The position numbers were made by a program, and so were the translations under genes. DNA of 64,000 nt, taken from NCBI GenBank assembly GCA_048013815.1, contig CM106585.1, positions 16,430,001 through 16,494,000 on the forward strand, in the 5' to 3' direction. The notes beneath the pieces are model-generated. The model was not told the DNA's origin. It saw nothing but the letters and a program-made list of their open reading frames with translations, and searched no databases. Of the stretch, positions 13,589-44,954 are shown piece by piece (positions within the stretch are counted from its first letter, which is position 1; each line of letters begins with the position of its first letter). Origin of the DNA: Setoptus koraiensis. Taxonomy: Eukaryota; Animalia; Arthropoda.

Positions 13589-16500
13589 TCAATCTCTCAA
13601 GAATGCTGGGTTCGATAGACCGGCGCCTGCGGCGCTTCTCTGATGTGTCGGGTGATGAACTGAAAACTCTCTTAGTGGATACCCCTTGCTTTTGCCCATG
13701 AATTTTTCTGACTTGGCTGCTGCAATCAGGTTTATCGTAACGGACACAACAAGCGCTGTTCCAAGTAGTATGACCAGAATTATCAGAGTGTTATCAAGCT
13801 CGCTTGATGCCACCTCAACACAGTGGCCTTCCTTGTTTTCATAAGACGATGGTATACATCTACATTGTGTTCCAGATCTCACATCATAGTGGCAAGCTGA
13901 TCCAGGTTTGTACAAGCAAAACGTTGAGTTGCTCAGACAATGGTTGATCGCTGTTCGGAGTGGCGAGAGGATTGCAGATTAGAACATTAGTATTGTTAGC
14001 TACTGGTCAAAACAAGCCGGCATTCGAGTTTATGTAACGGTTGCTCATTTTTATGCTTCGCAGTTATTCTTAGGAAAGAATAAAGGAGGAATATATTCAA
14101 ATACTTACGAGCACATATTTGTTTAACTGGTATTTGTGACGGATCTTCGTGTCTGGGTAATAGATCTTTAACATCGATTACGTCAACATTTTCGGGACAT
14201 TTACACGAGCAATATGATGTGTTATTGTCCATTCTAACACTCTGGGCCTCCAATCCGCAGAATCCATCCAATTCACATGGTATGATCTGACGGAAGTTTA
14301 TGCTTGATTTCTCCGCAGCAGCGGATCTCTGTGTGATAATTTTATTATCTAATTTTTGTAACAATATCCTCGGTTTAATCCAACAGAACCTATTGTCCAT
14401 ACTGTTGCTATCGCACTGACTGAAAACTCTCTCTACGGGTTCTTTTTCCACAGGTGAGTTCGATTGTAAATAGATAGTACAATTCAAATATTGGCCACTT
14501 TTGTCAGTCTCATAACATTGGCTGTTATTAATGGTTACTGTGAATGGATTATAAATTATTTGTCTCAACGACTGTCTCACATCCTCCACTAGATCAGAAT
14601 TGAGTCTGTACTTTCTGACATTATCATGAATGCGTGCATTGCACTCCTCTATGGTGTCGACAAACGGATCTAGATCACTCTCGTAGGGATCTTCGAGAAC
14701 TGTTTTTGGTATTAGCGTTGTGATGTTGCACTGATTGAGATCCGTCAAAAATATTGATTTCTGTTGCTGTCGTAATTGCTTTTGTTGTCTTAATAATTGT
14801 GGCTCATGAGTTAATAGCTCCAAATCATGACTACTGTTGTTGGTTTCACCAGGCCTCGCGGGCTCCGGCATAGGCGATAGCCTATATTGTGGATGAAGAT
14901 ACGGAGAATCCGACTTGGGATCTGACAATTGATTGATGCCATTGAAAGGTTTGTCCTGCCATTGTCCAAGAAGGTGATGATGAGCCTGTGTCCCATTGGC
15001 GCCAGGAATAGCTGGTATCAACCTGTGATACCTAGACTCTGGATCATAATATTTGTTTACTAGCAACAATTGAAAACTGTAACTGTACTTGGCTATGAAA
15101 CACTTGTGATCTGTTTGATTGTGAATAAAACCAGGCAAACAATCGCAGCCAACTTTATCTTTGTCCAGTAATTTACAGACGGCCTGTTGTCTAAGGCAAT
15201 CGTAGCGTTTTGCGGCGCATTTCGGCTCGCAAGTGAATTCGTTAATCGTTCCCTGACCAAAGAATTTCTTCTCCGTCGAGGGCGGACAGACACAATCAAA
15301 CATACTTGCCTTACTGTAGTCGGGCACACAAATTGCTCCTTGATTAGTGCAAATATTGTAACTATTCGAGCCTCTGGTACAAACACGCCTCAATCGACAC
15401 AATGGCGACCCGAGCATATTAACGCCTCCAAAGTAATCCGACGACTCGTTGAGTCTCGGCTCATACCTGCTACTCAGCAGCGAGTTCAATGAGCCATCCG
15501 AACAGCGACACTTGAATGTCCCCGGATCACACAAACCCAACGGGCACACTTGTTGTATCTTGTCGAATTGATCGCGATTTTCGGCATAACTAGTAGAGCA
15601 AACATTCAAGCATCTCACTGATTGAGTATACTTGCCGCTAGAATTGCCCCCACGATCGTCTACAACTGTTTCGCCCTCGGCCAAATAACCGGGCTTACAT
15701 TTGCAACCTGCCTGGGTGCATATTTGATTGTCGCCTTGACAGAGTGGTCGGCACGACAACTGTTGCATCGGTCTACACGTTCGCTGGTCGCTGGCTAGCC
15801 TGAAACCGGGATGACAGGCACAAGTGTAGGGTCGTTGTCTGTCATTGTCATTGGGTAGGCAGATTTGATCGCAATCGTTTAGTGACGGCAAGAGACAAGC
15901 CGTTGATTTGCACGATTTTGTACCATCTTTCGAGTCTATTTCCAGCCTGAATTTGTCGGCACATTTGCAAATGGGTTTCTCGCCAGGGACTGTGGGCAGA
16001 CAGATATGAGCGTCAAAACCGCATTCCAATTTTCTGTTATGACACTGTTTGCGTACGCATCTTTCAAACAATTATATGATGATCATGGACGATATTAGTA
16101 TCAATTATTTAAACCCAATCAATAGCAACAAGATACACACAAACTACTGATAAACTCACCCGTTGACAGTATCTAAAGGGTCCTCGTACCAATCCTGGCT
16201 TTCATCGCAGTGGCAAGGTCTAGTTTCGTTGAATCTAAAAGAATAAAGCAATAATATCATGATGATGCACATGTAATCAATTGAATTCGATGACCGAAAT
16301 AGATAAATCAGGGTTAGCTTGCGTCTACTTACGGTTTTGTAATATCACAAGTCATGCCGATTGACGGGCACATGATTGAATTGCATTTATGGGCTTGCCG
16401 ACATCTGGAATCATCACTCAGATAATAGTCGCTCTGACAACTACAACGGAACGTCTTACCCTCCGAATCGTAGCTATTCTCGTCTAGAGGCACCTCCATA

Positions 16501-20616: not shown

Positions 20617-22131
20617 TCATCGACTTCTATCGTACCGGTACGAGCCATCACGCCTTGAATCTCTCTCATCTCTACGCCTAGAGTAATGGGGTGACCGGGA
20701 TCGCCTCCGTCGATCATGATAACTTTTCATTATCCTCGAATCGGGCGACGGTGTGCGAAATTTGAAAGATCCTCTACCTTTCATGGTTCGTCCAGATCTA
20801 GATACTCTAGTTGATTTTTCTACAGTTGCGACAGCACTGCAAATTAATTTCCCTCTATTGTTATTATTTGTATCATCAGTGGTCTCATCGTTATCACTGC
20901 TTTTGTCTTTGTATCTACTCAGATCTGTATCTACTTCAATAGGTTCTTCATCGTTGTTCACACTCTCATCCGATTTCTTTACTATCGGCCGAAACAAGAA
21001 TTTGTTTACCGGAATTTGGGGAATTTCGTCGGGCTTGACGCTGCAAGGATAATCTCGTTCGTCTTCGGCGTTTTTGTTATGTATGCTAGTTTTCTCTTGG
21101 ATTACCACATCGCTGTCATCGTCTTCATGGTTCCTTTCTAAATTAGCACCGTCTTCTCTGTCTTTTCTTTTACTTCTAACCTTACTTGATGATGATGTGT
21201 ATGACGAAGAAGACGATTCTTCAGAATGAGATCCATCAGAGGTAGAACTATCATCAGATGAGGTCGACCCTGCTACTGATGGCGACGAGTTGGCTGACGA
21301 ATTTGAGCTAGAAAGAGATGATGACGCGGATGACGATATTGATGAGACTGACGACGATGATGAGGACGATGACGATCTTGATGAGACCGACGACGATGAT
21401 GAGGACGATGAGGACGATGAGGATGCCGATGATGATCTTGATTGACGATGAGAGCGTCTTTTTGGGCTTGGCGACATTGAGTCTCTCCGACTAGAGTATT
21501 TTTTTGGTAATAGTCTCTCTTTATTTTTATCATATGACCGCTCCGACATCCCTCTCGATTTTTTGACGTCATAATTCTGATTTCTCTCAAGCGAGTCTTG
21601 TTTCAATTCGCCACAATCAACGATGAGGATCTTGGTGATCGGCCTTGATTTGGCGTCGACAGGCTGATTCTCAATTTCTTTGACAATGTCGAAACCATCA
21701 ATGAGCTCGCCAAATACTACATGCACTCCATCCAGATGCGAAGCCGGAGCTGTGGTGATGAAGAACTGTGACCTGTTTGTATCCTTTCCTCTATTAGCCA
21801 TGGACAATAGGTAGGGTTTGTCATGTTTCAACGTAAGATTCTCATCCTCGAATGGTCCACCGTAAATAGACTCGCCTCCTTTGCCGTCGCCACTAGTGAA
21901 ATCGCCTCCCTGTATCATAAAACCTTTCACCACGCGATGAAAGGTACTATTCTTGAAATGAAGAGCCTTGTCGAACTTGCTGCTGAATCCCCTCTCACCA
22001 GTGCAAAGACATTTGAAATTTTTGCATGTCTTAGGACAGACATCCGTATAGAGGCTAAACGTTAACCTTCCTAGTTTTCTCCCGGCAACTGCTATCTCAA
22101 GAAAACACTTAGAGGTTGATTTACTAGACAT
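20617..22131 (-). CDS. PPIG: Cyclophilin-type PPIase with Ser-rich and RS-rich tail (PPIG/Moca-cyp class), intronless
   Basis: GRLTFSLYTDVCPKTCKNF, FHRVVKGFMIQGGDF, LLSMANRGKDTNRSQFFIT, HLDGVHVVFG, then poly-Ser and RSRSPH/RRD repeats; SRSGRTMKGRG near the C-terminus. Confidence 0.9.
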   Translation of the reverse strand: MSSKSTSKCFLEIAVAGRKLGRLTFSLYTDVCPKTCKNFKCLCTGERGFSSKFDKALHFKNSTFHRVVKGFMIQGGDFTSGDGKGGESIYGGPFEDENLTLKHDKPYLLSMANRGKDTNRSQFFITTAPASHLDGVHVVFGELIDGFDIVKEIENQPVDAKSRPITKILIVDCGELKQDSLERNQNYDVKKSRGMSERSYDKNKERLLPKKYSSRRDSMSPSPKRRSHRQSRSSSASSSSSSSSSSSSVSSRSSSSSSSSSVSSISSSASSSLSSSNSSANSSPSVAGSTSSDDSSTSDGSHSEESSSSSYTSSSSKVRSKRKDREDGANLERNHEDDDSDVVIQEKTSIHNKNAEDERDYPCSVKPDEIPQIPVNKFLFRPIVKKSDESVNNDEEPIEVDTDLSRYKDKSSDNDETTDDTNNNNRGKLICSAVATVEKSTRVSRSGRTMKGRGSFKFRTPSPDSRIMKSYHDRRRRSRSPHYSRRRDERDSRRDGSYRYDRSR

Positions 22132-22510: not shown

Positions 22511-23551
22511 ATGGCTGCTGAATTCCGTGTACTCAAACCTTTGGAGTTTCATAGGCAACTATTCAAGAAAGCAACTCGCGTTGATGGTCGAGATATGCTA
22601 TCCGCAAGACCGATCCACTTTGAAACAAACGCTATCAAAACCGCTGATTCATCATCTTTAGTTAAACTAGGCAATACCAGTGTTATTTGCGGCTGCAATG
22701 TCCAACTATTATCACTTAAGACATTGTTAGAGAGAAATGCGGATATAAACAGAACTCTTATTCAACAAACTACCAAGCCCACAACAATTCTCAGGTGTGA
22801 AACTGCCGATGCCGATCAGATTTTGGAAGAACTAGACTTGGTCAATATTAGAGTAGTTCTCCCTCCCATATGCTCCAACCCGTCTGGTTTCAACAGTCAG
22901 AATAGTATGAATAGGCCCTCGACAACAACTGCGTATACCATTCCCTCCAAGCAAAGCGAAGCCGCTGCTCTTTTGACTAGACTACTCAATAGGATTCTGA
23001 AAGACTCTAAATGCTTGGGCAATAATCAACTTAGGTTGGGCCAAACTAATTTCTTCTGGTTGCTAGACATAGAAGTCATTTGTCTAAATTATGATGGGTG
23101 TTTGATAGATTGCGCCCTAGTTGCTGCCTTAACTTCAATAAATTCGCTAAAATTACCAAAAGTTAGATTGCAAGTGTCAAGTGAAGAGGATGGAAATGAT
23201 GATATACCTTATGTAATTAATGAAAACAATAGTTTTCAGTCGATAACTCAAGACGAGCCAATGGATACGTGTGATAGCAATACTAAAATCATCGAGAGTA
23301 GTTTAGATTCAATTAATCTTCCTATTAGTACATCGTTCGCCATAATCGAAGACTACATCCTATGTGATCCATCTATGGAGGAAGAGAATCTCGCTTCGAG
23401 TGTCTTCTCTATAGCCATCGATTATAAGACAGAGCAAATATGTCTGATAGATAAAGTTGGTGGATGGCCGATTGAAGAAAACCAGTTGAACGACCTTGTT
23501 AGACGATCCATTAAGAGAGCAAAAAATATTGGAGACATGATTACTCGGTAG
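22511..23551 (+). CDS. EXOSC8: Exosome complex RNase PH-like subunit Rrp43, intronless
   Basis: MAAEFRVLKPLEFHRQLF...RVDGR..SARP, ADSSSLVKLGNTSVICG, WLLDIEVICLNYDGCLIDCAL.AAL, ILCDPSMEEE, IDKVGG. Confidence 0.85.
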   Translation: MAAEFRVLKPLEFHRQLFKKATRVDGRDMLSARPIHFETNAIKTADSSSLVKLGNTSVICGCNVQLLSLKTLLERNADINRTLIQQTTKPTTILRCETADADQILEELDLVNIRVVLPPICSNPSGFNSQNSMNRPSTTTAYTIPSKQSEAAALLTRLLNRILKDSKCLGNNQLRLGQTNFFWLLDIEVICLNYDGCLIDCALVAALTSINSLKLPKVRLQVSSEEDGNDDIPYVINENNSFQSITQDEPMDTCDSNTKIIESSLDSINLPISTSFAIIEDYILCDPSMEEENLASSVFSIAIDYKTEQICLIDKVGGWPIEENQLNDLVRRSIKRAKNIGDMITR

Positions 23552-23856: not shown

Positions 23857-26800
23857 TCATTTAAGAGATAAGGTGGGGGTTGATTTGTTGTCGCCATTCT
23901 GTCTATGAAGCCGATTATTGTGCTCGTTTTTATGACGTTTCATGTGTGCCGATCGGGATTTAATTTTGAGAAAAACTCTTCCACATACTTTACATGGAAA
24001 CTCTTCAGTTCCCACTGTAGAAGTGCTACTGGACGGTAATGGGCTAGAGGTACCCGACAAACAACTACTACTCTCGCCACCCAGAGAGGGTGGCGCTATA
24101 TTTTGAGGTGCGTTTTGACGACTGATTGGTTTAGAATTCGCTATGACTGCTTTCAATCCGTTATTGTTATTGTCTATATTACTTCTCATTACGAAACCTA
24201 TTTGTAACTCATCAATGTCTAAATCATTTCGGCAACTATTGTTATTGTTGAGATCCTCGTCAAGCCCAAATTTATTCTTTTCATGAATGTCTAGCTTATT
24301 CAACAGGCCTTCACGTTCATACCTTGAATTCCTCATACGATTATATTCATTAGTGCATACTTTTTTCCAGAAGTAATAGAATTGTATACATTCTTTAACA
24401 GTCTTAGTTTTGATATCTTTAGATATGAGGAAGAAATTTTTTTCATGCTTGGCAATGGCTCTATTGTAGGATTCAATTTCGTCTGTAGACCATTTGTCAG
24501 ACTCTGCAAAGAGAAGATTTAATATTAGATGTCAATGTGATTTTGATTGATTTGATTCCACGAATGTTCTCTATACTCTTGAAATGATTAAAAAACTTAC
24601 CTTGATAACTATAGCTATGGAGTGGATCTTGTTGACTAATAGAATAAGGATCTGGATTGAGCAGCTTTATGATGGCTTCTCTGAGATCACCGGAAGTTTT
24701 ATGAAGGAGATGCAGTGCGTATTCCCGATTTCTTCCGCCTCCTTTTATGCAAGATGTACATGATAGGTCAAGATATATATCAACATCTCTGTCTGTCAAT
24801 TGAGAGACTACTTCAGGTGCCCATATGAGGTCAGCGAAGTCTTCTCTGTACTTGTCGGTACATATTCCAAGATGTTCAGGTATCTGCGCTCTGATGTCTA
24901 AATCGGCCATTGGTAATATTCCAACAACCTTTATTACATCAATCAGCTAGTTGTTTGACGATTACACTGACAGTAGGTCTTTGTGTTATACTAATATCTC
25001 TATCTGACATGTTATAATCAGTTTTGTAACATTTATACATAATGGTCGTGTCCGCTATGTTAGACTTCTTGATGCTAATTAATGTAGTCAACTGCTCTTC
25101 TTGAAATAGTGCGTGCGCGTCCCTTGCGTTATCTAGTGCTAATATAATTTTTATATTATAATGTATGCTACAGTGTGCCACTAGGTGGCTAATATAACAG
25201 TGTAAATCTTTGTTGTTTTTTGTTGTTGTTTATGCACATAAGTTTAAATCGAGCTCACACGAGACTGATTTGGAGTAGTGATGTTCAAACTGATGTTTGA
25301 GTGAGTATTATATACAACATCGTGTTGTGTGTCAACATCTTCATACTTGCAGATTTTTAACGTCTCATCATTATTGTTCAAGTCACAACAAACACTCTGA
25401 TTATTATTATTAGTGTTCATATTTTGAGTATCACTCTCAGAGAAAACATCGTCTTCTAGTTCCCCACCCAAGTCAAAGCCAAGTTGAGGAACCGGCATCT
25501 GTTTCATGCCGCTAATTCTTGGTCTTATCGGCTGGGGAGGAGGTTGATTGTAGCTCGGACTGCTCATAGTGGCAATGTTCTTCAATTTACCCGACACATG
25601 ATTACCGGTATTAGCTAGGCGGAGAATCGAAGGATCTGATGGAAGTTGGTAATTATGGTTCAATAAGTCGTCGTTGGGATTGTAATCATCCTCTACTCTA
25701 CTAGAGGTAGAGTAATGATGATTGCTAGTCGTGGTGCTGGAAGAATAATCATCTAAGGAAACTTGTGATCCATAGACCTCTTCACTGTGGCGGTGGTGAT
25801 ATGCGAAATTATGATCATGACCATGATTCAAGTTATTGCCCATTCTCATATGTCCATTGGGAGTATTGTATGATACGAAGGGTAACCTAGGTCTTGTGTG
25901 CAACCCTGCCGGGAATGTGAAATGCTGATTTTGATCAGTAGGTGTCGCTGGCAAACTTATGCTAGGTTGCCTTATTGTATTGGATATGTGATGCATCTGA
26001 AATTGTTGATTTATAGCAATCTCTTCGCTGGCACCATCAGTGGCGACATTATGATCGTCTACCAAAGCGTAATGGTCATATGAGCTAGTAGAAGTGCTTT
26101 GGATTCGATTGTAGCCAGGCTGGATTTGTAGTGGTTGAAGCGGTTGCTGTTGTTGTTGTTGAGAGATTGATTCCTCAATGTGAGATCCGTTGGCAGTGAG
26201 TGTTACAGATTGATTCAGCGAGATCGCATCATCAGATGGATTAGTAGCTAAACGAAGAATCGAGGGATCCGATGAAATTTGGTAATTATGATTCAATAAA
26301 TCGTCGTTGGGATTGTAATCATCCTCTACTCTACTAGATGTAGAGTAATGCTGATTGCTAGTCGTGGTGCTGGAAGAATAATCATCTAAGGAAACTTGTG
26401 ATCCATATACCTCTTCACTATGGCGGTGGTGATATGCGAAATTATGATCATGACCATGATTCAAGTTATTGCCCATTCTCATATGTCCATTAGGAGTATT
26501 GTATGATACGAAGGGTAACCTAGGTCTTGTGTGCAACCCTGCCGGGAATGTGAAATGCTGATTTTGATCAGTAGGTGTCGCTGGCAAACTTATGCTAGGT
26601 TGCCTTATTGTATCGGATATGTGATGCATCTGAAATTGTTGATTTATAGTAATCTCTTCGCTGGCACCATCAGTGGCGACATTATGATCATCGACTAACG
26701 CATAATGATCATAGGAACTAGTGGAGGTGCTTTGAATTCGATTGTAGCCAAGCTGTAGTTGTTGTTGTTGATGGTGATGCTGTTGTTGCTGCTGCTGTGG

Positions 26801-27475
26801 CTGCAGCGGTTGTTGTTGATGCTGCTCTGAGATTGATTCCTCAACATGAGATCCGTTGGCAGTGAGCGGTTCAGATTGATTAAGCGTGATTGCATCATCA
26901 GATGGATGAGTTGGTAAATTAGTTGAAGACGATTGAAGTTGTTGAATTTGTTGTTGTGCTGGTGCTCTAATAGTAATAATGTTGTGATGATGCTCCTTAT
27001 GCCTACGCAACGATCTTGCATCACAATAAGTTTTATCACAACCCTGAACAGTGCATTCAAACGGTTTTCTATTACTATGTGTGAGCATGTGTCCAGTGAG
27101 GTGGTCGTGACGCTTGAACGCCTTGGAGCATTGTTTACAAACAAAACGTCTCTCATCTGAGTGTGTCAATTTATGCTTCGTTAAGGCACTTTGATTACTA
27201 AATTGTTTATTACACTGTGGACATATAGGCCTGACAGGTTCCGTCCTGATCTTTCTACGTCTTCCCCGTTGCTTAACATTGTTGCAACTAGTGTTGTTGT
27301 TGTTATCATTATTATTGGTAATATTATTGTGATTATTGTTGTTATTATGATTATTATTATTATTGTTATTATTAATATTATTATTATTGTCACTTTTATT
27401 ATTATTGTACATGATGAGGCTATATGGTGGTCGTGCAATAAGTAACAGTGTTGATGGTCGAATGTGTATTACCAT
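23857..27475 (-). CDS. C2H2 zinc finger - ELM2 - SANT transcriptional regulator (TRERF1/ZNF541/MIDEAS family), multi-exon
   Basis: Three N-terminal C2H2 fingers (CPQCNKQF..HKLTH; CKQCSKAFKRHDHLTGHMLTH; CTVQGCDKTYCDARSLRRH), ELM2 (RAQIPE..LIWAP..GRNREYALHLL), SANT across the 24510-24600 intron (DKWSTDEIESYNRAIAKHEKNFFLI..KTVKECIQFYYFWKK), C-terminal FPCKVCGRVFLKIKSRSAHMKRH. Junctions at 24900-25260 and the true start are not resolved. Confidence 0.85.
25613..26910 (-). repeat. In-frame tandem duplication (period 633-666 bp) inside the zinc-finger gene's first exon
   Basis: Block SDDAI.LNQS...SDPSILRLA occurs twice; anchors 26226/26892 and 25615/26248. Confidence 0.95.
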
Positions 27476-30666: not shown

Positions 30667-31980
30667 GAGCGCATATTCAGCACATTGGGCCCATGACGAG
30701 CCGTAAGACATATTAAAAATTGAAGATTAAAGATCATGCCCAATGGATGAACAATTAATGTAATGAATAATTATTAAAGCCACCATCGAGAAGAAAAAAT
30801 GAATATCAAACATCACAGAGTAAAGCTTCAAAGATAGTAATCAACCAAATTATATTGAGGAGAAATTATAATCTTCAAGGATGCAACAAGATAAATATGA
30901 AGACAGAATGGATGAAGAAAATGATTTTGAGTACATATTTGTATTAGTTAATATGCTTCATAATTCACCAAGACAATTCAATTCAACAACTAAATTACAA
31001 TTATCACGTACTACCATAAGTAAAATGCAAATGATTACTATTATTGTGTTCCATATTCATTATTACATAGATATTATTATCAATCACATTATCTGCTTGT
31101 ATATTTATAATAAACTAACGATCGGTAAAAGAAGATTGCTCGCTACATTCGATTACCAGGTCGGTTTTGATATTGGATTTTTTTCACCATCTCAAGTGCG
31201 CTAATGAGTTAGTAGTGATTAACAGAGGCAAATACTAGAAGTAGGTCGCCCACGCAACGAATAAAATTTGTTTGTTTGAGAATATCTCACTTGGTACATA
31301 CGAAGCGAAAGTTTTCTCAGTCAAACGTGTAGAATATTCTCAAGAGCTGTTGGCTCACTCCTGTCTAGATTCAAACTAAATGGTGGGATGCTTGTTGTTT
31401 CGAATAAAATCATTATCTCAGTGAGCCTTGCAATCGCTACAAAAGTAACTTTCAATGATATGGTACAACATAGGCAGCCTGAACAATGTAGTTAAAAACG
31501 AAGCCTCTTCCCAAGTACACATCAGTTGTTTGCTACCATGATGAATAGTTTGAATAGAAAGCTCAACTCTCTATATGCGCAATTCGTTATTATTATAATC
31601 TTTTCCATTTGGAATTAAGCTCACAATCTAAACCTCAAACTGTATGGCTAAGTAACCGCTCGATTCACTTGACTTGGAATGTGGGAAGTAGCTAAACTCA
31701 ACTATTTAGAAGTAATAAGGCTAACAGTGGGTTAAGTCTAGAGAGAGAATGAAAGAGTCGATAAAATTTGTCTTATGTCCATACATGGAAAGCAGAATCA
31801 CTCCTTAAATATCGCTCGCTAAAGTCAGTTCGCACATCCATATGGCTTATTCAATTGAATTTTTGTAGCCATTGAATAGATTTCATTCAGACAATAGAAA
31901 CATCTATTGAATTTTCGGATGACCAACCGAAAGTGACAGCAAATCATTGAACAGAATAGTTTTACAATTATAGCCTCATA

Positions 31981-33630
31981 ATGTTGTCTCCGAAATTCGG
32001 CCGCAGAAATCAATCTCGCCAATCAAATCAGTCAATAAGAGATTCTCCAGCTACTCCAACTTCATCCCCGCAACAATTCAATAACCTTAGCCAGTATCAA
32101 TACAATAGTAAAGAGTTTCAAAGACAGCAACAACAACAGAATCTACCTCATCATGGGCCGCCTGTATCGTTGTCGCACCCGCGCTTAGATATGAACAAAC
32201 AAGAATCTGGAGGATTCTTGGATTACATTGGCACATTGGGTCGCAAGAAGAAGCAACGCGAAGGTAAGCAACATATCTCCAACTGTTATCTCTCTATTTT
32301 TGTGTCCCATAGAACCTCGCTAGATAGGCTGATAATTTAGTTGCTCAAAAAACTATAAAACAAGTATGGTGATTAACGATGTCATTCAATATCGTGCAAA
32401 TTTTCTGCTCGAATGCTACATGACGATAATACAGTTGCTGAGCTGACAGTGGAACAAGTCGAACAAGAAGGAAAAGAGGCCATAGATGGAAATATCGTTC
32501 CCAGAATAATAGATGCCGGCGGCGATTACGGGCTTGGCGAGAACGAGAGCAGGGCGGTGATTGATCAGTCATCAAGAGATTCGCCACAATTTAACCATTT
32601 GGTCACTACATTGGTCAATTGGATTAATGATGAATTAAACGATCAGCGGATCATCGTGAAAACTCTAGAGCAAGATCTTTATGATGGTCAAGTTTTGGGT
32701 AAACTAGTTGAAAAACTGAGGTAAGTGCATGACGCTTTCGGTGGGTTGAATTATCAGACGAAAAATTATCGAAATGTCTCTATCATTTGAATAACGGATT
32801 TTCGTTGTATCTCTCTCAATAGCGGATCAAAATTAGACGTGGTTGAAGTGACTCAGAACGAAGATGCTCAAAGACGTAAATTGCGACAAGTCCTCGAGAC
32901 TATCAATAGAATATTGAACCTGAACGCCAAGTGGGCTGTAATAAAATGGACAGTAGAGGGTATTCACAGTAGAAACTCAGTTCAGATCATTCACTTATTA
33001 GTCACGATGATACGACATTTTAGAGCACCAATTCGTTTGCCCTCGGATGTTTCGGCGAGAGTTAATTTCGTGTCAAAACAAGGGGGCAAAATCATAACAA
33101 GAAGCATAGAGGAAAAACTGACAGAAACTTACAATGAATTAGGTTTAAAAACTGAGCCACGTGACGCATTTGACACCCTATTCGATCATGCGCCAGATAA
33201 ATTGGCCGCAGTTAAAAGGTCACTATGCAATTTCGTTAACAGACATCTTAACAAGATCAATATTGAATGCTTTTCTGTTCACACCGGAGGCGATTTGGAT
33301 CCCCAACAATTTAGCGATGGCCTTCTATTGATATTTCTTATGGCAAGTTTAGAGAACTATTTTGTACCACTGGGCAATATTTTTACACAACCTACGGACC
33401 CCATCGCTGATATGGCACCCAACGGCGTCCAAACAGCTCTTCAACATGAAAATTATGTCAATACGTCACCAATACACAAACTACATAATGTTAATGTGGC
33501 CTTCAAGCTAATGGAAGATGCGGACGTAGACCTAAAACAAAAAGTACGCGCTGAGGATATTGTAAACGCCGATCTCAAGTCAACTTTACGAGTATTATAC
33601 ATGATATTTAGCAAGTACAAACACGTCTAG
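31981..33630 (+). CDS. parvin: Parvin (two CH domains), copy 1; exons 31981-32263, 32435-32720, 32823-33630 (458 aa)
   Basis: GGFLDYIGTLGRKKK, LVNWINDEL..QRIIVK.LEQDLYDGQVLGKLVEKL, EVTQNEDAQRRKL, EPRDAFDTLFDHAPDKL..VKRSL..FVN.HL.K, HNVNVAF.LM, DIVNADLKSTLRVLY.IF.KYK; frame-consistent GT-AG introns. Confidence 0.95.
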
Positions 33631-33866
33631 AACGACATGAGAAGCATCAACAAAATTTACTCCACTAATCAGTATATTTCTAATGGTAATTTTGAGAATG
33701 TGCATGTGATCAACAATTTACATTAACTGCCATCTCTGTCTGTCACAATAATGTAAAAATCTTCATCAATTCTGATAAAATCAAAACATTAACCACATTT
33801 TCGGTCGATTAGTCGTTGGGTGTCACCTAATTCGCACGAACAGCTTTCCAACTAGATGGTTTTTTA

Positions 33867-35831
33867 TTATTCTTTATTTTCTTCGCTGCTATAACATTTA
33901 TCATTCATCATTATTGGGTCGAAGCCCATTTTCTTGAAATTGGTGAATACAGTGCCTCCCTCACTGCTGTCAGACACCAGTACTGTTCGTCTGGGCAATA
34001 AATGGAACAGCAGATGAACATCAGACATGCTGAACTCGTTACATTCGTATAGTAATAATGAATCAATTGAAAGCCCAAACCATGATGATGATCTCAGTGC
34101 ATCTGGAAAAGTGCATAAAATCACGTTACAATCTTCATCATAATAAAAGGACCCAGAATCGTACCTGTATATCTTCAATTCGCTCAGCTGGTAGATTTTC
34201 TCTGCGATTGCCTCAAGTGAAAGATCACTACTAGCACATATCATCATTTTTGTATAATTCGGATATGATATTGTGTTGTGCAAATGAATAGCCAATGACA
34301 CAATAGATTTTATCCTGTTCGCCTCTTGTCCTGGCGCATTCACCATGAGAGAGACCCGATTGAATGCTGCTGATTTGATGGCCTCATCCACTGTGTGTTC
34401 ATAGTAGAGCTCCCATGGTATCAGCGTGTTTTTAGAAGCTAAGTCACTCACGACTTGCACGTCTCCACAACTTTTTTCGATAATTTCACGCAACAGCTCA
34501 TCGCTCGAAATTCGTCTAATCTTTCGTTTTAGACTCTCGCAACCCACGTTATGGTGATGGAACAGGACATCTTCATTGACCAACCAGTAATTGCCTGATT
34601 CTGATCGGTCGCGTTTACATTCTTCTTCACTCATCTCGATGGACACATGTAAAATTTCCTCGCCGTTGATGATTCTTGGACATAGAAATGCACTGTCTGA
34701 CCACAACTCTTCACCACTCACGCAGTCGTATTCGGTCATTCGCAATACGGATGAGGTGACTCTGTCGAAACCAGAATTCTTTTTTATGAATGACTTGTCC
34801 AGTGTCCCACTACACGGGAACGCCTCGAGAAAATGTCTCCATTGCCGAGATTCTCGGCCCCATCGTACGGTCGATATTTGTTGTTGACACTCTGGCAGGA
34901 AATAATCTGTGTAGATTTGCGACACACGATCCTCCAAATCACGTATCGCTTTTGGGCTGGTAATTCCTGCAGGTATGTAATGAGCAGTGCTTTCTTTATA
35001 ATGCAATTCAGCTTGTTCGCCGCTGATAATTGTTGGCACGTCAATATTTGGCAATGGGCCGTAGTATTGATCGAGAACGAGTGTGCGCAACCGCGATGGG
35101 CGATTGTTAATGAATTTTTTTAGTTCGTCTATATCTCTAGACTCTCTTATTGTCACCGATAGACTCTCCAAATTCGGGAAGAAGGTGAGAACGGCATCCA
35201 TCTGGTACTTCATCTCGTTATAATAACGGTTCCTTCTGATATCGATCGAACGCAACACAGACCAGGGGCAATAATCTGAATAATAAAACATATCGGTTAT
35301 AACCCCAATCACGCTGAGATGCAATAACCTTCCTTCAATCAATTCCACCGATCTTCTCAGTTCGTTAACGTCCTCAAGCATGACATGATCCAGTTTGAGC
35401 GTCGTCAATTGATGACAATTGGTCACAATCATGGTCAGTTCATTGGGTGCAAAGGATATTCCATGACAATTGAGTGCTGTTAGTAGGCTGCAGTTGTCAG
35501 ACGGACTGAAATATGAGTCTGGCATGAATCTTCTGATGGCATAGCATTCTGAATGCAGGGTGAGTCGTTTTAGTTTGGGCAGCTTGCGAACAATTGGCTC
35601 CAACACTTGACAATCTGGCGAATCCGAAATATCGCTACTGAGTGTGCCCTCCTCTAGATTTTCGTTATCAATAAGCTCGCTGAATCTCGTAGACACTTGG
35701 GCCAAATTATGTCGATCGAGTAAATCGTTTAAATTTTCGATGATAATGAGCAACAGCTCAGGCGGAAGCATATCCAGGCGCCAGAGAGATCCTTCATTAT
35801 TGGGCTGGTCGACCGAAGAGTTGATTGGCAT
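33867..35831 (-). CDS. F-box + LRR + catalytically dead UPF1-like helicase fragment, copy 1 (intact, 654 aa, intronless)
   Basis: F-box [36 protein letters not shown]; LRR-like units [39 protein letters not shown]; C-terminal ~350 aa follows UPF1 motif order with degenerate Walker A/B. Confidence 0.8.
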   Translation of the reverse strand: [654 protein letters not shown]

Positions 35832-36333
35832 TGCTTGTGAATATATAGTAGGGCACTATTGGAACTGCCGTAAAATAGCTAGTATGGAAATGATAAAATA
35901 GATACAAGAGTTTGCACGAATTTGCAGAAAAATCTGGCCGAGATCGCTGATGTTCACTTGATGTATGTTGATGACGATAGAGACGATGAATCGAGGAATT
36001 TTATCATTGCTGGTCATTATTGAGATGGACAGTGTGATGCACACAAGCGGAGAGCGGGTATTCTGGACAAACAAGCGCCATTGTCCTTGCAAACAGACAA
36101 TGCTGACCAACTCACAACACTTTCGCTACCGCACTTCTCCAGTTGACATTCCCGTTAATGCGACGTGACCCGTGCTTAGAGCAGCTGAGCGTGCAAAGAA
36201 AAGAAAGGCAAGATAGATTGGAATCGGAATGGATCTCATTCAGACGATAGAGACATCTATAGAATTTTCGGATGACCAACCAAAAGTGACAGCAAATCAT
36301 TGAACAGAATAGTTTTACAATTGTAGCCTCATA

Positions 36334-37984
36334 ATGTTGTCTCCGAAATTCGGCCGCAGAAATCAATCTCGCCAATCAAATCAGTCAATAAGAGATTCTC
36401 CAGCTACTCCAACTTCATCCCCGCAACAATTCAATAACCTTAGCCAGTATCAATACAATAGTAAAGAGTTTCAAAGACAGCAACAACAACAGAATCTACC
36501 TCATCATGGGCCGCCTGTATCGTTGTCGCACTCGCGCTTAGATATGAACAAACAAGAATCTGGAGGATTCTTGGATTACATTGGCACACTTGGTCGCAAG
36601 AAGAAGCAACGCGAAGGTAAGCAACATATCTCCAACTGTTATCTCTCTATTTTTGTGTCCCATAGAACCTCGCTAGATAGGCTGATAATTTAGTTGCTCA
36701 AAAAACTATAAAACGAGTATCGTGATTAACGATGTCATTCAATATCGTGCAAATTTTCTGCTCGAATGCTACATGACGATAATACAGTTGCTGAGCTGAC
36801 AGTGGAACAAGTCGAACAAGAAGGAAAAGAGGCCATAGATGGAAATATCGTTCCCAGAATAATAGATGCCGGCGGCGATTACGGGCTTGGCGAGAACGAG
36901 AGCAGGGCGGTGATTGATCAGTCATCAAGAGATTCGCCACAATTTAACCATTTGGTCACTACATTGGTCAATTGGATTAATGATGAATTAAACGATCAGC
37001 GGATCATCGTGAAAAATCTAGAGCAAGATCTTTATGATGGTCAAGTTTTGGGTAAACTAGTTGAAAAACTGAGGTAAGTGCATGACGCTTTCGGTTGGTT
37101 TCAATTATCAGACGAAAAAGTATCGAAATGTCTCTATCATTTGAATAACGGATTTTCGTTGTATCTCTCCCAATAGCGGATCAAAATTAGACGTGGTTGA
37201 AGTGACTCAGAACGAAGATGCTCAAAGACGTAAATTGCGACAAGTCCTCGAGACTATCAATAGAATATTGAACCTGAACGCCAAGTGGGCTGTAATAAAA
37301 TGGACAGTAGAGGGTATTCACAGTAGAAACTCAGTTCAGATCATTCACTTATTAGTCACGATGATACGACATTTTAGAGCACCAATTCGTTTGCCCTCGG
37401 ATGTTTCGGCGAGAGTTAATTTCGTGTCAAAACAAGGGGGCAAAATCATAACAAGAAGCATAGAGGAAAAACTGACAGAAACTTACAATGAATTAGGTTT
37501 AAAAACTGAGCCACGTGACGCATTTGACACCCTATTCGATCATGCGCCAGATAAATTGGCCGCAGTTAAAAGGTCACTATGCAATTTCGTTAACAGACAT
37601 CTTAACAAGATCAATATTGAATGCTTTTCTGTTCACACCGGAGGCGATTTGGATCCCCAACAATTTAGCCATGGCCTTCTATTGATATTTCTTATGGCAA
37701 GTTTAGAGAACTATTTTGTACCACTGGGCAATATTTTTACACAACCTACGGACCCCATCGCTGATATGGCACCCAACGGCGTCCAAACAGCTCTTCAACA
37801 TGAAAATTATGTCAATACGTCACCAATACACAAACTACATAATGTTAATGTGGCCTTCAAGATAATGGAAGATGCGGACGTAGACCTAAAACAAAAAGTA
37901 CGCGCTGAGGATATTGTAAACGCCGATCTCAAGTCAACTTTACGAGTATTATACATGATATTTAGCAAGTGCAAACACGTCTAG
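36334..37984 (+). CDS. parvin: Parvin, copy 2; exons 36334-36616, 36788-37073, 37177-37984; open frame, five amino-acid differences from copy 1
   Basis: Near-identical to copy 1 including introns; may be an incipient pseudogene. Confidence 0.9.
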
Positions 37985-38220
37985 AACGACTTGAGAAGCA
38001 TCAACAAAATTTACTCCACTAATCAGTATATTTCTAATGGTAATTTTGAGAATGTGCATGTGATCAACAATTTACATTAACTGCCATCTCTGTCTGTCAC
38101 AATAATGTAAAAATCTTCATCAATTCTGATAAAATCAAAACATTAACCACATTTTCGGTCAATTAGTCGTTGGGTGTTACCTAATTCGCACGAACAGCTT
38201 TCCAACTAGATGGTTTTTTA

Positions 38221-40196
38221 TTATTCTTTATTTTCTTCGCTGCTATAACATTTATCATTCATCATTATTGGCTCGAAGCCCATTTTCTTGAAACTGGTGA
38301 ATACAGTGCCTCCCTCACTGCTGTCAGACACCAGTACTGTTCGTCTGGGCAATAAATGGAACAGCAGATGAACATCAGACATGCTGAACTGGTTACATTC
38401 GTAGAGTATTAATGAATAAATTGACAGCTCGCATACCGCCGACAATCTCAGTGCATCTGGAAAAGTGCATAAAATCACGTTACAATCCTTATAATCTCCG
38501 TACGCACCGCGTACGTACCTGTATATCTTCAATTCGCTCAGCTGGTGGATTTTCTCTGCGATTGCCTCAAGCGAACGATCACTACCAGCACATATCATCA
38601 TTTTCGGATAATTCCGATATGATATTGTGTTGTGCAAATGAATAGCCAATGACACAATAGATTTTATCCTGTTCGCCTCTTGTCCTGGCGCACTCACTAT
38701 GAGAGTGATTCGATTGAATAGTGCCGATTCGATAGCCTCATTCACTGAGTGTATATTGGCGTACTCTCGTTGTCTCAGCGTGTTTTTGGAAGCTAAGTCT
38801 CTCACGACTTGCACGTCTCCACAACTTTTCTCGATGATTTCACGCAACAACCCATCGCCCGAAATCCGTCTAATCTTCCGTTTTATATTATCGCAACCGA
38901 AGTTATAGTAATCGCACAGGGCAGTTTGATTGACCAACCAGTAATTGCCTGATTCTGATCGGTCCTGTTTATATTCTTCCTCACTCACCCGGAAGTGTAA
39001 ACGTGAAATTTCCTCGCCGTTGATGAGGTGGTACTTGAGTAATCCACCAGTGGACCACAACTCTTCACCACTCACGCAGTCGTATTCGGTCATTCGAATT
39101 CCAACGGACAAGTCATTCATTCTTAGGAATGACTTGTCCAGTGTCTGACCACACGGGAACGCAAAGAGAAGATAGCTGTAATATTCATATCTTCGTTCCC
39201 ATCGAACGGTCGATATTTGTTGTTGACACTCTGGCAGCAGATAATCTGTGTAGATTTGCGACACACGATCCTCCAAATCACGTATCGCTTTTGGGATGGT
39301 AATTCCTGCAGGTATGTAGTGAGCAGTGCTTTCTTTATAATGCAATTCAGCTTGTTCGCCGCTGATAATTGTGGGCACGTCAATATTTGGCAATGGGCCG
39401 TAGTATTGATCGAGAACGAGGGTGCGCAACGGCGTTCTCAAACGGTTCAAGATTCTAACCAGCTCGTCTAAATCTCTCGACGTTCTTATTGTAACCGATA
39501 GACTCTCCAAATTCCGATATGAGAAGAGAACGGCACTTATCTGGCCCTCGCCATCGTCCCCATAATGATGGTTCCTTCTCATATCCATCGAACGCAAAAC
39601 AGCCCTAGGCGGATTACCCGGATGACACATCAAATAGCGACTTAAACCAAACTCATCGGTTATAACCCCAATCACGCTGAGATGCAATAACCTTACATGA
39701 ACCAGTCCCATCAATCTTTTCAGTTCGCCAGGGTCCTCAAGCATGACATGATCCAGCTTGAGCGTCGTCAATTGATGACAATTGGTCACAATCATGGTCA
39801 GTTCATCGGGTGCAAAGGATATTCCATGACAATTGAGTGCTGTTAGTAGGCTGCAGTTGTCAGACAAACTGAAATATGAGTCTGGCATGAATCTTCTGAT
39901 GGCATAGCATTCTGAATGGAGGGTGAGTCGTTTTAGTTTGGGCAGCTTGCGAACAATTGGCTCCAACACTTGACATATGGCGAATCCGAAATATTACTAC
40001 TGAGTGTGCCATCCTCTAGATCTTTGTTTTTCAGATCGATGAGCTGGCTGAATATAATAGACACTTGGGCCAAATTATGTCGATCGAGTAAATCCTTTAA
40101 CTTTTCGATGATAGGGAGCAACAGCTCAGGCGGCAACATTTCCAGGCGCCAGAGAAATCCTTCATTGTGCTGGTCGACCGAAGTGTTGGTTGACAT
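38221..40196 (-). pseudogene. F-box-LRR-UPF1-like gene, copy 2, with a 1-nt deletion near 39975 separating the F-box from the rest
   Basis: Copy 1 reads cca gat tgt caa gtg (PDCQV); copy 2 reads cca tat gtc aag tg, one base shorter. The F-box (ATG 40196) runs out of frame, and the remaining 582 codons (38221-39969) stay open. Confidence 0.75.
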
Positions 40197-40686
40197 TGCT
40201 TGCGAATATATATTAATATAGTAGGAATATATAGTAATAGGCACTATTGGAACTGCCGTAAAATAGCTAGTATGGAAATGATGAAATTGATACAAGAGTT
40301 TGCACGAATTTGCAGAAAAATCTGGCCGAGATCGCTGATGTTCACTTGATGTATGTTGATGATGATAGAGACGGTGAATCGAGGGATTTTATCATAGCTG
40401 GTCATGAAGGAGATGGACAGTGTGATGCAGACAAGCGGAGAGCGGGTATTCTGGACAAACAAGCGCCATTGTCCGTGCAAACAGACAATGCTGACCAACT
40501 CACAACACTTTCGCTACAGCACTTCTCCAGTTGACAGTCCCGTTAATGCGGCGTGACCCGTGCTTAGAGAAGGTGAGCGTGCAAAGAAAAGAAAGGCAAG
40601 ATAGATTGAAATTGAGACAAGGTTCGACTTCGAGCCGCAACGCTAACGCTAGCAGTCAACAGGTCAGTTGCTGGGTGTACGATCAT

Positions 40687-42849
40687 TTATTTATCATTTA
40701 TTCTCTTCGGCTTGAAGCCCATATTTTTGAAACTATTGAACACAACGTCCACCTCGCTACCGTCTGACATAATTGTGATACGTTTGGGTAGAAAATGGAA
40801 TAATAGATGCACATCGGACATACTGAACTCGTTACATCTGTACAGTATCAAAGAATGAACTAAAAACTCGGTCCACGACGACAGTTTGAGTGCATCGTGA
40901 AAAGTGCATAAAATAACGTTACAATCAACATCATCTATGGAGTTATTGAAGAAAATGCTTCGTGCAGCAGGCATGCCCAAATCCGATTCCACTTTTAGAT
41001 CTCTGGTATCAATTCTTGAATTGTCGACATTGACGTTCTCGTAGTAATCATCATCTTCATCATCGACAATATCTTCATCATTGAGATCGTCAAAATAAGA
41101 AAAAGATGATTGGTGCGACTGACAGTCAGCCGAGCTGAAGATCTTGACCTTCAAATCAGCTAATTCATGGAGTTTCTCTGCTATGGCCTCGAGCGAATCA
41201 GCACTGCCGGCACATATCAACACTTTTGAATTACCGGTAGAAGGTGTCCGATCACTTTCTGATATTGTCTTGTGCAAGTGAGCCAATGACACGATGTCAA
41301 GTATGCCGATGGCCTCTTGTCCCGGCTCACTCACCAATATGGTAACTCTATTACATATTGCCGATTGTAAGGCCTCCTCGATGACCCATATACCTGTGTC
41401 ATCCGATCTCAGCGTGTTAAAATCCAAGTGGCACACATTTTTTCCCTCTCCACAACTTGTTTGGATAATTTCGCGCAATAGTGTATCGCCTGCGATGCGC
41501 CTGATGTTTCCTTTCAGCCTCTCCATCGACTGCTGATAAAATAGCTGTAGACTCTTGTTGATGACAGAATAATTGCCCGACTTTGGGTGGCCGCGTTTCA
41601 ATTCTTGCTCGTTTTCCATCTCGAATTTCAAATACAAAAATCGCTTGCTGTTGATGAGACGCAACATGGGCACTCCCTCGGCCGACCACAACTTTTTACC
41701 GCTGCTGTCGTATTCAATCATTTGCATCCTGTTGGAGTGATGGATTTTTCTTGCGAATGTCCTTTATAGCGTGTGGCGATCCAGTCTCGCTGTGACAAAA
41801 TGTTTTCGTTGGCAAGATTCTCGTTTCCAGCGTACCGAGGATATTTGTTGTTGACACTCGGGCAGCCAATGATCATTGTATAGTGACGACACACTGTCCT
41901 CCAGATCACGTATCGCCTTCGGGCAGGTGAGATTTTCTGGCTGTGACAGTTGTTTGGTAGTAGTGACGCTTTGTTCGTAATGCAGTTCAGCTCGCTCGCC
42001 GCTAATAACCGTTGGCACGTCAATAATATCCGAAGCCGGCCAGCAGCCGTAATATTGATCAAGAACAAGGGTACGCAAATGGGTATTGGACAGAATGCCG
42101 GTCAACTGGTGCACCCATTTGTCGTCTGTCAACGTTAGGGCGAGACTGTCCAATCGCTGGCACGCCAAGAGAAAATTTGCCGCATCGTAGTAGGCCGATG
42201 ACTGCTCGTCGATATTAATATCGTCCATAATGCGATTTCTCCTAATATCTAGCGAGCGCAATGCGAAATAATCGTGCTCGTGGTCGCAAAAGGGTCTCCG
42301 TTTAATTCCTATCATGCGAAGGTGCAAAAGCGTGAGGCAAAGTCGGGGCAACAGGGCGTTCAACTCGTCCGCATCGTCTAGCTCGATATGATCCAGTGTG
42401 AGCGCCGTCAACAGTGGCAACCGCAACACCAGCAAGGCCAGTTCCGTGGGCGCAAAGGATATTTTGTGCAATGTGAGCGTTGTTAGCAGGCCGCAATTGT
42501 CCGTCAAACTGAAATGAGAATCCGGTCCGAACCGTCTGATCGTCTGATTGTATTCCGACACCAGGCTCAGGCGCTCTATTTTGGGCACCGTGCAAAGAAT
42601 TGTTTCCAGCTCCCGACAATCTGGCCAATTGGCAAGCCCGCTACTGAGAGTGGCCTCCTCTACAAATCTGTTGGCGTCGTAAACGAGCTCGCCGAATCTC
42701 GGCGACATTTGGGCCAAATTGTGTCTGTCGCGTAAATCGTCCAGATGACCGATGATCATGAGCAGCAGCTCTGGCGGCACCGTCTCCAGCAGGCAAAATG
42801 TCTGTCCATCGCCGTCTGTTTCGTCCGAGTCGAACCGGTTAATATCCAT
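40687..42849 (-). pseudogene. F-box-LRR-UPF1-like gene, copy 3 (diverged), with one in-frame TAA at 41764-41766
   Basis: ORFs 41764-42858 and 40687-41727 are in the same frame: ...RLDRHTL*RTFARKIHHSNRMQMIEYDSSGKKLWS, aligning to copy 1 GTLDKSFIKK...RMTEYDCVSGEELWS. F-box LETVPPELLLMIIGHLDDLRDRHNLAQMSPRFGELV; first in-frame ATG at 42849. Confidence 0.75.
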
Positions 42850-44954
42850 GGTGTACACATAAACAAATATTAGATAATAATTATGTAACGGGCCTCAATG
42901 TGCGCGATAAAACGTATTTCGCTGGCCATTTCATTGTCGATGGAGACGCGGCCAATTTGCTCTGGTCACATGTTTTGCCACCCCTTGCCCTCTAACCACG
43001 TGCGCCCGAACCGCGAAAACACCCACCAATGCACCACATGCGCCCATTTCAGTCCGCCCGCTGAAGATGGCGCCATAGGCACCAGGCTCAATCATTGCGA
43101 GCCAAACGATTGACAATTGTGAGACTCGCCTATCGCGGACACTCTGCAATGTGTCGCTGGAGGCGAGCTTTTCTTTCTGTATGATTGTGGATTGTCTCTG
43201 TATGACGAGAGCGAGCTCGGGATACGGCTCGGGCCACTTCCGCCCGTCAGGCCGGCAAGTTTGGCGGCTGTCGCCGAAGGTTCGACGGCTTCTCGGTGCG
43301 CTCGCGTGAGCCGCCCTCGTCAGCCATTCACCTGTCGCATCCGTCGATATGGGTCTGACAGTTTTGTTTTTGTTTGCTTGCGTCGTGTTGCTCGCGGGCC
43401 CCAATCGGTGACGAGTGCGACAAGTGGGCGAGCACATGTGCGCAAATCGCGGCGCATTCGTAGCGCCACGAGGACCTTTTTTCCAGCTCGGGACCCGGCT
43501 GCGTATCCCGAGCTGACCGGCCGCAGCAGATTGGCCATGCGCGGCTCGCGAATAGCCACCCAACATCTTGGCGCCCGTCCATCGACTTGCCAGGCGCATG
43601 CCCATGCCCGAATTGCAATTATGGGGCCCACAAGATGAGTCACACGGCCCACGACAACGGCGCAATGTTGACTTTTGCGTCATTATAAAATTATGTAACG
43701 CGGGCAGGCATCTCTGGTGACATTTATTGCGTGGCTAATCTTAATCTTGTTTGCAACTTTTGATAATTGACACCATTGGCACGCAATTTAGGCGACGACA
43801 AGCCCATGGACAGCCAGGCCAGGCATTCCATTTGTGCGGGCCCGACTTGACTGAAGCGATTGAGCGCTTCTTGGGCACTCTGGCGTCTCTTGGCTGACAA
43901 GAAACGAGGCAGAATTGCAAGAATTTTGGCATTTTTGTCCATTGGACGGGCACGCGCTAAACGATCGAGCTAGCAAAAGTGTTACATCGTAACGCGGCGG
44001 TAACTGGGCCCGATTAGTGCGGTGCGGGCCCCGATGCGACGATAATCATTGCGAGCGGGCCCATGCCAGCAACCGACGAGAGAAATAGTTTCACCGTGGC
44101 CATTTATAACTCTGGTGTTTATTATTTGCGCTACTGCTGGCAGTGCAAGCCAACAGTTACAGTTACAGTTGTATATGGCGATAATCTGTTAAACAAACAG
44201 GGGCACCGATTTTGGGTGTGCGTGTGTGTGTGTGTGTGTGTGCTAATCTCGATCGATTAGATTCAGCGTGGCATAGAAGCACGAGAAGCAAGCGAAAAGC
44301 GGGCGCGGGGGGCCGATAATACACAAACAAGACAAACATTGGCATCGGCGGCCGCCATTAGTCAGCGGCCAATGGGCATTCTCCAGTGTCGCCCACTAAC
44401 TGACCACTGCACCATGCCATGCAGCACCTATGCACTTTTGGGCACTTCTGGCGCCGTTCACAACAGTGTCTTTCGCTCACGGTGCCCCGTTCGGTCACCT
44501 GAGGCCCGTTGCAAGAGCCGCGATCAGCTCGTAATTGATCGCTGCTTGACTTTGGCTTGACTTGAATTATTTATCCAAGATTATCCAAGCTAATCTGCGC
44601 TGTCCAGTGTGCAACAATGTGCAACAATGTGCAACAATTTCGCCACCAATAACCCGAGCCGGTCGTCATGTTACTCGGGCGCCCTCGCCGCCGGTTACGA
44701 AATGAGCCCCCTCGTACAAGTATTCGCCAGGCAAACAAGCGCTCCGAGAGTGTTATCGCGCCCTCTTGCAACGGCACGCCAGCCTACTCCAGTTACGAGT
44801 CCAGGTATTGTCCAGTTTGTGTTGAAAATAACAACAACAAACTGTTTCAAGTCAACAGTTTGTTATCATTAGTTTCGACTGCCATCGTTGTTTGCGCTCA
44901 ACTCGACGCCCAGCTAACGGTGCGATGCTATTTTTGTTACCTAACTCGCGCGCT

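Follow-up and report, generated by a model that had tools for sequence, protein, structure and literature searches.

The stretch described here, 64,000 nucleotides (nt) of contig CM106585.1 from the Setoptus koraiensis assembly GCA_048013815.1 (positions 16,430,001 to 16,494,000; hereafter the window), carries on its minus strand a single-exon open reading frame (ORF), copy 1, in which an F-box and a leucine-rich repeat (LRR) solenoid are followed by half of a catalytically dead UPF1-like helicase. F-box proteins decide what SCF (Skp1–Cul1–F-box) ubiquitin ligases destroy: the F-box provides the contact with Skp1, and substrate choice falls to the domains that follow it. What, then, is half a helicase doing behind an F-box? 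Is it still a motor? Is it the leftover of a longer gene, or a part that the cell uses? The explanation that seems best to us, with a probability of roughly 60%, is that copy 1 is a genuine protein-coding gene whose product is a substrate receptor of the SCF type. Its N-terminal F-box would dock on Skp1/Cul1 and give the protein a ubiquitin-ligase function, and the LRRs and the UPF1-derived pseudo-helicase would jointly form the target-binding part, the pseudo-helicase thus having a say in target choice. The parts of copy 1 lie as follows, in window coordinates and amino acids (aa).

33867..35831, minus strand: copy 1, single-exon ORF (F-box, LRRs and dead UPF1-like half-helicase), 654 aa, stop codon included
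35655..35774, minus strand: F-box, aa 20-59 (Pfam; three model helices at aa 24-56)
35022..35651, minus strand: LRR solenoid, aa 61-270 (beta/alpha repeats in the AlphaFold2 (AF2) model; hypervariable patch at aa 165-254)
34509..34952, minus strand: stalk helix, 1B-like beta-barrel and second stalk helix, aa 294-441 (model secondary structure, Foldseek, alignment A4)
33903..34400, minus strand: RecA1-like domain, aa 478-643, ending at the RecA1/RecA2 boundary (profile, fold, alignment A4)

The ORF is uninterrupted over 654 codons and starts at the first ATG downstream of an in-frame stop; only 236 nt separate its stop codon from a convergent neighbouring gene. Two Pfam models recognise the F-box above their cut-offs, F-box-like (PF12937, aa 20-57, 25.3 bits against 24.3) and F-box (PF00646, aa 20-59, 21.6 bits against 20.5), and even at E 10 the scan of copy 1 returns the F-box alone, with no hit to PF09416 or any other domain. 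Directly behind it comes an LRR solenoid of about 210 aa of the Skp2/TIR1 kind. Fold comparison of the AF2 model shows that the N-terminal half (aa 14-269) resembles Skp2 (VIA Z 15.1), and TIR1/COI1 and FBXL17 too; the Pfam LRR models stay below significance on copy 1 and reach it only in its relative P0005. A preliminary description of this DNA had placed the F-box at about 35670-35780 and the LRRs at about 35050-35620, and both assignments hold, with small shifts of their borders, on the Pfam scores for the one and the Skp2/TIR1/FBXL17-like solenoid for the other.

The C-terminal 350 or so aa of copy 1 are homologous to the stalk, 1B barrel and RecA1 domain of UPF1-like helicases of superfamily 1B (SF1B). 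Several lines of evidence lead there. In an exhaustive HMMER search of 1.84 billion representative proteins, copy 1 matches a protein called here P0008 at E 2e-9; BLASTP of aa 290-654 against it runs end to end (aa 312-643 against 183-587, pairwise E 2e-16), and P0008 itself hits the helicase core of human UPF1 at E 3e-53. When a profile is made from the F-box family, with P0008 and every true helicase left out, it finds the RecA1 domain of UPF1/Nam7 in the PDB at E 3e-17 to 2e-13 and Sen1 far more weakly (E 9e-5). Beetle UPF1 used as a tblastn query hits the stretch from Walker A to motif Ia in copy 1 (E 2.6e-4) and in its neighbouring paralogue, copy 2 (E 1e-5). Thinner queries give nothing: phmmer with the single copy 1 protein against PDB sequences has no match, nor do word-indexed homologue searches with the copy 1 protein or with the family alignment, and a profile of the three window copies alone finds nothing significant in the PDB. 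Such a three-copy profile is too thin for the PDB, so the link to UPF1 rests on the wider family or on P0008 as a bridge. Language-model atlas searches point to AAA_11/MOV10 clusters at the level of leads only (0.65-0.73).

The predicted structure agrees. The whole-protein AF2 model of copy 1 has a mean predicted local distance difference test score (pLDDT) of 69.5, most blocks in folded domains reaching 70-88, and lays out a long helix (aa 294-315), a beta-barrel (316-419), a second long helix (420-441) and an alpha/beta domain (492-643). With Foldseek, its top 10 PDB and top 11 Swiss-Prot matches are all UPF1 orthologues, aligned over query aa 263-641 (most starting at 265-276), and aa 489-650 compare with RecA domains at a VIA Z of about 15.7. 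Modelled alone with a deeper alignment, aa 290-654 reach a pLDDT of 82.7 and a predicted template modelling (TM) score of 0.77; the top 12 PDB matches are again all UPF1, with TM up to 0.56, the best being the UPF1–RNA complex 2xzo. These figures come from models whose input alignments held true helicases. The earlier proposal that the tail is collinear with the UPF1 core, with UPF1 expected as its best profile and fold match, is borne out by the BLASTP alignment, the family profile (E 3e-17), tblastn and Foldseek, and the residue pairings with UPF1 and the coordinates given for them are essentially right. A helicase of viral or Helitron type was considered as well and rejected: what is matched is cellular UPF1, and Rep and viral domains are absent.

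Is the module still a motor? Motifs and boundaries were read from alignment A4, which includes eight true UPF1 orthologues, and the motifs compare as follows.

34314..34337, minus strand: degenerate Walker A, aa 499-506, APGQEANR against PPGTGK in UPF1; GK(T) is EAN at aa 503-505
34035..34058, minus strand: degenerate motif II, aa 592-599, LLLYECNE against VLIDESTQ in UPF1; DE is YE at aa 595-596
Motif Ia: MICASSD in copy 1, LVCAPSN in UPF1
Motif Ic: ILCTF in copy 1, ICCTC in UPF1
Motif III: LVSDS in copy 1, LVGDH in UPF1

The catalytic residues are gone not from copy 1 only: in the motif table no family member keeps GK[TS] or DE, and motif II reads YR, DN, ID, EN or NE in the others. Motifs Ia (ICAxS) and Ic (CCT/LCT) are conserved throughout the family. 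About 65 alignment columns at the position of subdomain 1C are missing in copies 1 and 2, and an insert at this position is retained in copy 3 and in distant relatives. Copy 1 ends 12 residues past a G-F-x-P motif, just ahead of the place of QYRMHP in UPF1, the first RecA2 motif. Could the second half sit on a hidden exon downstream? This was rejected: tblastn with the RecA2 domain of P0008 finds no match anywhere in the 64-kb window, and the 236 nt to the convergent gene leave no room. All four of the losses claimed in the preliminary description are thus confirmed, namely GKT to EAN (Walker A reads APGQEAN, aa 499-505), DE to YE, the deletion of most of 1C and a protein that ends about where RecA1 ends. 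Judged from its predicted sequence, ATP-driven activity is excluded for the helicase part of copy 1, which cannot bind or hydrolyse ATP or translocate because the P-loop lysine, the motif II aspartate, 1C and RecA2 are all missing.

This design is not a one-off. The HMMER search returned only eight relatives, all from unannotated assemblies of public sequencing runs and seven of them from one run. Four (P0001, P0003, P0004 and P0007; 670-723 aa) share the layout of copy 1, three are fragments, and the eighth, P0008 (824 aa), is complete for both halves of a UPF1-like SF1B helicase, Pfam AAA_11 and AAA_12. In P0003, P0004 and P0007 Pfam sees an F-box together with AAA_11 at 41.0, 28.5 and 40.3 bits, above the curated score of 27. 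A closer relative of copy 1, 41-54% identical over aa 34-644, lies on a contig of a second run (L005); a stop and a frameshift interrupt it, and it has lost more of the P-loop. Two metagenome scans found no relatives. The truncated, dead design recurs in two broken paralogues in the window and in two other sequencing samples. All F-box-linked members stop 2-14 residues past the G-x-x-P that closes RecA1, immediately before the QYRMHP column, and this end point is shared by members from three samples that are only 22-27% identical.

Where does the module come from? It is 18-20% identical to UPF1 in alignment A4. The best database matches of P0008 are true UPF1 orthologues with the zinc-knuckle (PF09416) and 1B (PF18141) domains, at E 1e-44 to 1e-51, as against values near 1e-27 for ECM32-type, IGHMBP2-type and bacterial proteins. 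In a maximum-likelihood tree of 28 sequences rooted on the bacterial proteins, the F-box-linked modules and P0008 form a clade with 100/100 support on a long stem; this clade, the UPF1 clade (94/91) and the ECM32 clade make an unresolved three-way split, with IGHMBP2 outside. Within it the window copies and L005 group at 100/100 and the four proteins of the other run at 99/96, and P0008 comes out as sister to all F-box-linked modules with weak support (86/57). By alignment and tree, then, the module classes as UPF1-like, with UPF1 as its nearest characterised relative, in a clade of its own and not inside UPF1. Given this long-stemmed clade in an unresolved split, a recent copy of the host's own UPF1 cannot be asserted. 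P0008 reads GV for GK in Walker A and NE for DE in motif II, which means that the catalytic decay may predate the truncation, and perhaps also the fusion. The P0008 locus (L002:892-3366) also encodes an N-terminal hydrophobic membrane anchor, and its product appears to be a membrane-tethered, probably inactive helicase.

Copy 1 has company in the window, where three paralogues stand head to tail.

38221..40196, minus strand: copy 2, 75% aa identity to copy 1
40687..42858, minus strand: copy 3, about 50% aa identity, with a single in-frame stop at 41764-41766
31874..40580, unstranded: tandem duplication with a 4.35-kb period, each unit holding a parvin-like gene and one F-box gene (copies 1 and 2)

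The only evident lesion of copy 2 is an apparent 1-nt deletion near 39975 (39975-39976) that breaks the frame; its F-box is intact in the other frame. The C-terminal piece of copy 3 (40690-41727) carries a long, very acidic, low-complexity insert with D/E runs at the 1C position. The two halves of the duplicated unit have fared differently. The parvin-like halves (32413-33630 and 36766-37984) are less than 1% diverged, introns and synonymous sites included, whereas the F-box halves differ by about 13% on average, with nearly identical stretches alternating, as in a mosaic, with patches of 15-32 mismatches per 100 nt. Neutral decay on its own cannot account for so sharp a difference; it suggests gene conversion involving other paralogues, or else that one half has been selectively homogenised. 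Between copies 1 and 2 the variable patches are LRRs 4-6 (aa 165-254), the 1B barrel (aa 315-434), which is hypervariable, aa 465-494 and the place once taken by 1C; hardly any change is seen in the first repeats, the two stalk helices or the RecA1 core. When polarised with copy 3, the derived changes number 22 against 25, and from this even split it follows that copy 2 is not drifting alone. In the patches the synonymous rate (dS) is raised along with the nonsynonymous rate (dN), and in this comparison of three copies mosaic gene conversion from other paralogues would explain them at least as well as positive selection.

Is the family under attack? The dead UPF1 look-alike could be an integrated decoy, a bait for viral or transposon factors that attack or bind UPF1, which the F-box would then send to degradation. 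The tandem birth-and-death turnover of the family, the mosaic hypervariable patches on exposed parts (LRR and 1B barrel) and the narrow taxonomic range are what one would expect, and there is a parallel in the expanded F-box families of nematodes, where positive selection is strong and a link to pathogen responses has been drawn (PMC8120010, PMC8665587). The module would, however, be a poor mimic: it is only 18-20% identical to UPF1, belongs to a long-branched clade beside UPF1 and ECM32 rather than being a recent copy of host UPF1, and has neither the CH domain nor the SQ tails. We know of no pathogen partner for it, and the joint rise of dS and dN fits conversion as well as selection. We therefore regard this explanation as doubtful. 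More doubtful still is its fuller version, drawn by analogy, in which copy 1 would be an animal counterpart of the plant 'integrated decoy' immune receptors, with the dead look-alike mounted on an SCF, viral or transposon factors ubiquitinated and the array as what an arms race has left behind. Attractive as the turnover makes it, a defensive decoy is speculation.

What would an SCF receptor of this kind bind? The copy 1 module is acidic (isoelectric point (pI) 5.1, net charge -17), whereas the same columns have a pI of 8.0-8.6 in six of the eight UPF1 orthologues. A protein target is favoured over RNA because the module is acidic and because RecA2 and 1C are gone, and the module would more likely bind protein than naked RNA. 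Alternatively, the half-helicase might use motifs Ia and Ic and the 1B barrel to bind single-stranded RNA or a ribonucleoprotein (RNP), bringing the SCF to RNA-bound targets; the conservation of both motifs across the family speaks for this, as does 2xzo, an RNA complex, being the best structural match. The RNA channel of UPF1 is built jointly by RecA1, RecA2, 1B and 1C, as seen in UPF1–RNA structures, and two of these four parts are missing here. The charge, with most UPF1 orthologues basic where copy 1 is acidic, also argues against RNA, and the conserved motifs are buried core strands that fold maintenance alone can explain. An adaptor directed at RNA or RNPs is on balance unlikely. Of the overall interpretation offered in the preliminary description, the anatomy stands (F-box, LRRs and a dead UPF1-derived half-helicase) and is now that of a conserved family; its substrate- or RNA-recognition module is kept as a protein-recognition module, the RNA part being less likely, and its suggestion of a decoy or regulator of nonsense-mediated mRNA decay finds no support, as copy 1 has neither the CH domain that binds UPF2 nor the SQ tails.

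For the substrate receptor, it seems reasonable to assume that the helicase part, incapable of using ATP or translocating, would serve as a folded scaffold: the two stalk helices would hold the 1B barrel above the RecA1 fold, and a recognition surface would be mounted on that RecA1 scaffold. The gene belongs to a lineage-restricted, tandemly duplicating birth-and-death family, in which the variable later LRRs and the 1B barrel may be a diversifying recognition surface.

How well does this hold against the possibility that copy 1 is a decaying remnant, a full-length F-box-helicase gene that lost its 3' half and kept a tail that does nothing by itself? The argument for a functional copy 1 is drawn from evolution: the intact ORF, the retained truncated design and the substitution rates. 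Between copies 1 and 3, dN/dS is 0.38 in the N-terminal half and 0.27 in the helicase-like half, rough values given a saturated dS of about 1; between copies 1 and 2 it is about 0.9, as decay would have it. Decay would also fit the single lesions in two of the three local copies and the state of L005, with its stop, its frameshift and its further deleted P-loop. It does not account for the same end before the first RecA2 motif in three samples at 22-27% identity, for the low dN/dS of the very half said to be useless, for core fold motifs conserved throughout the family or for a module that AF2 folds confidently (pLDDT 82.7), and a mere remnant strikes us as very improbable. Several points nevertheless weigh against a working receptor, beside the saturation of dS. 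With two of the three window copies disabled by one lesion each, there is turnover in the family, and copy 1 might be the next to go. This DNA is present in five sequencing runs, which look genomic and are silent on transcription: their contigs are short, end where variants occur and have equal depth over the ORF and the intergenic DNA. With true helicases in the model alignments, the fold matches agree with the sequence homology and are not independent proof of it. As for the target, the relatives differ in charge (P0007 has a net charge of +8), and charge is a weak predictor of RNA binding.

If copy 1 is such a receptor, why would it matter? Each new kind of domain behind an F-box opens a new class of targets, and here an RNA-surveillance motor enzyme would have been stripped to a non-catalytic scaffold, reused behind an F-box, and then retained and amplified within a single lineage, which would make it a clean case from nature of a pseudoenzyme that became an adaptor module. 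Were the target to be an RNP or the product of a virus or transposon, it would be a new link of ubiquitination to RNA surveillance or defence. Since the family is invisible to Pfam on copy 1 and absent from annotated databases, ordinary annotation would say only 'F-box protein'.

The window around the array looks as follows. Many of its genes consist of one long exon or are split by introns of about 100 nt, and the G+C content rises from about 40-44% to 53-59% just past copy 3 and stays high to the window end (about 42000-64000). The neighbouring long ORFs are these.

13996..16071, minus strand: EGF-like protein
20617..22131, minus strand: cyclophilin-type isomerase with a long tail
22511..23551, plus strand: RNase PH-like exosome subunit
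25244..27475, minus strand: C2H2 zinc-finger protein

Has anything like copy 1 been seen before? Full-text literature searches for an F-box with a UPF1-like helicase or pseudohelicase gave nothing relevant, and copy 1 would thus represent an undescribed helicase-derived recognition module behind an F-box receptor, with no published description found. Fold-cluster searches of the AlphaFold DB return UPF1-type proteins and only one doubtful match covering both halves of the model, the cluster representative I3EIJ7. This is a 1229-aa 'Helicase ATP-binding domain-containing protein' aligned over query aa 20-641 at a root-mean-square deviation of 20.9 and a TM of 0.16-0.25, and it could be an LRR-plus-helicase protein of unrelated origin. 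In the ESM Atlas, a search by shape gives a 60-member cluster of 625-aa proteins, named just 'F-box domain-containing protein', aligned over aa 13-639 (TM 0.34-0.36). The cluster is mostly from Rotifera and has no common Pfam family; it may be an annotated, unrecognised branch of the family, which is a lead and not a finding.

The earlier statement that no described protein has this architecture stands as far as the literature searches go and needs one qualifier, FBH1/FBXO18, which combines an F-box with a superfamily 1 (SF1) helicase and works as an SCF ligase (PMC2294136, PMC4148199, PMC12946210). FBH1, the one well-studied protein to share this pairing with copy 1, is an active UvrD-type SF1A helicase without LRRs (PMC2294136, PMC12946210). 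It is thus a complete 3'-5' DNA translocase, whereas copy 1 is of the UPF1 type (SF1B), half-length, dead and equipped with LRRs; no search is led by a UvrD-family match, the sequence and fold matches all being to SF1B helicases of the UPF1/Sen1/IGHMBP2 type. The F-box families of nematodes and plants offer another comparison, with their lineage-specific tandem expansion, pseudogene turnover and variable target-binding domains (PMC8120010, PMC8665587, PMC3030570). The copy 1 family resembles them in all three respects; they use FTH/FBA, kelch, LRR or other domains, none reported to be helicase-derived. P0008, the closest full-length helicase relative, shares with copy 1 the ECxQ...V.W start of 1B and LPRR before motif III, but it has a hydrophobic anchor instead of the F-box and LRRs and keeps 1C and a complete RecA2 (Pfam AAA_12, E 1e-35). 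Compared with UPF1/Nam7 itself, the stalk helices, 1B barrel and RecA1 of copy 1 are collinear and motifs Ia, Ic and III and the G-x-x-P end are recognisable; unlike UPF1, copy 1 lacks the UPF2-binding CH domain, 1C, RecA2, the Walker A lysine and the motif II aspartate, and its module is acidic, fused behind an F-box and LRRs and placed in its own 100/100 clade. Finally, like the FBXL class (Skp2, FBXL17, TIR1/COI1), copy 1 has an F-box followed directly by an LRR solenoid, but where these proteins end with the repeats or a short tail, copy 1 adds a pseudo-helicase module of 360 aa.

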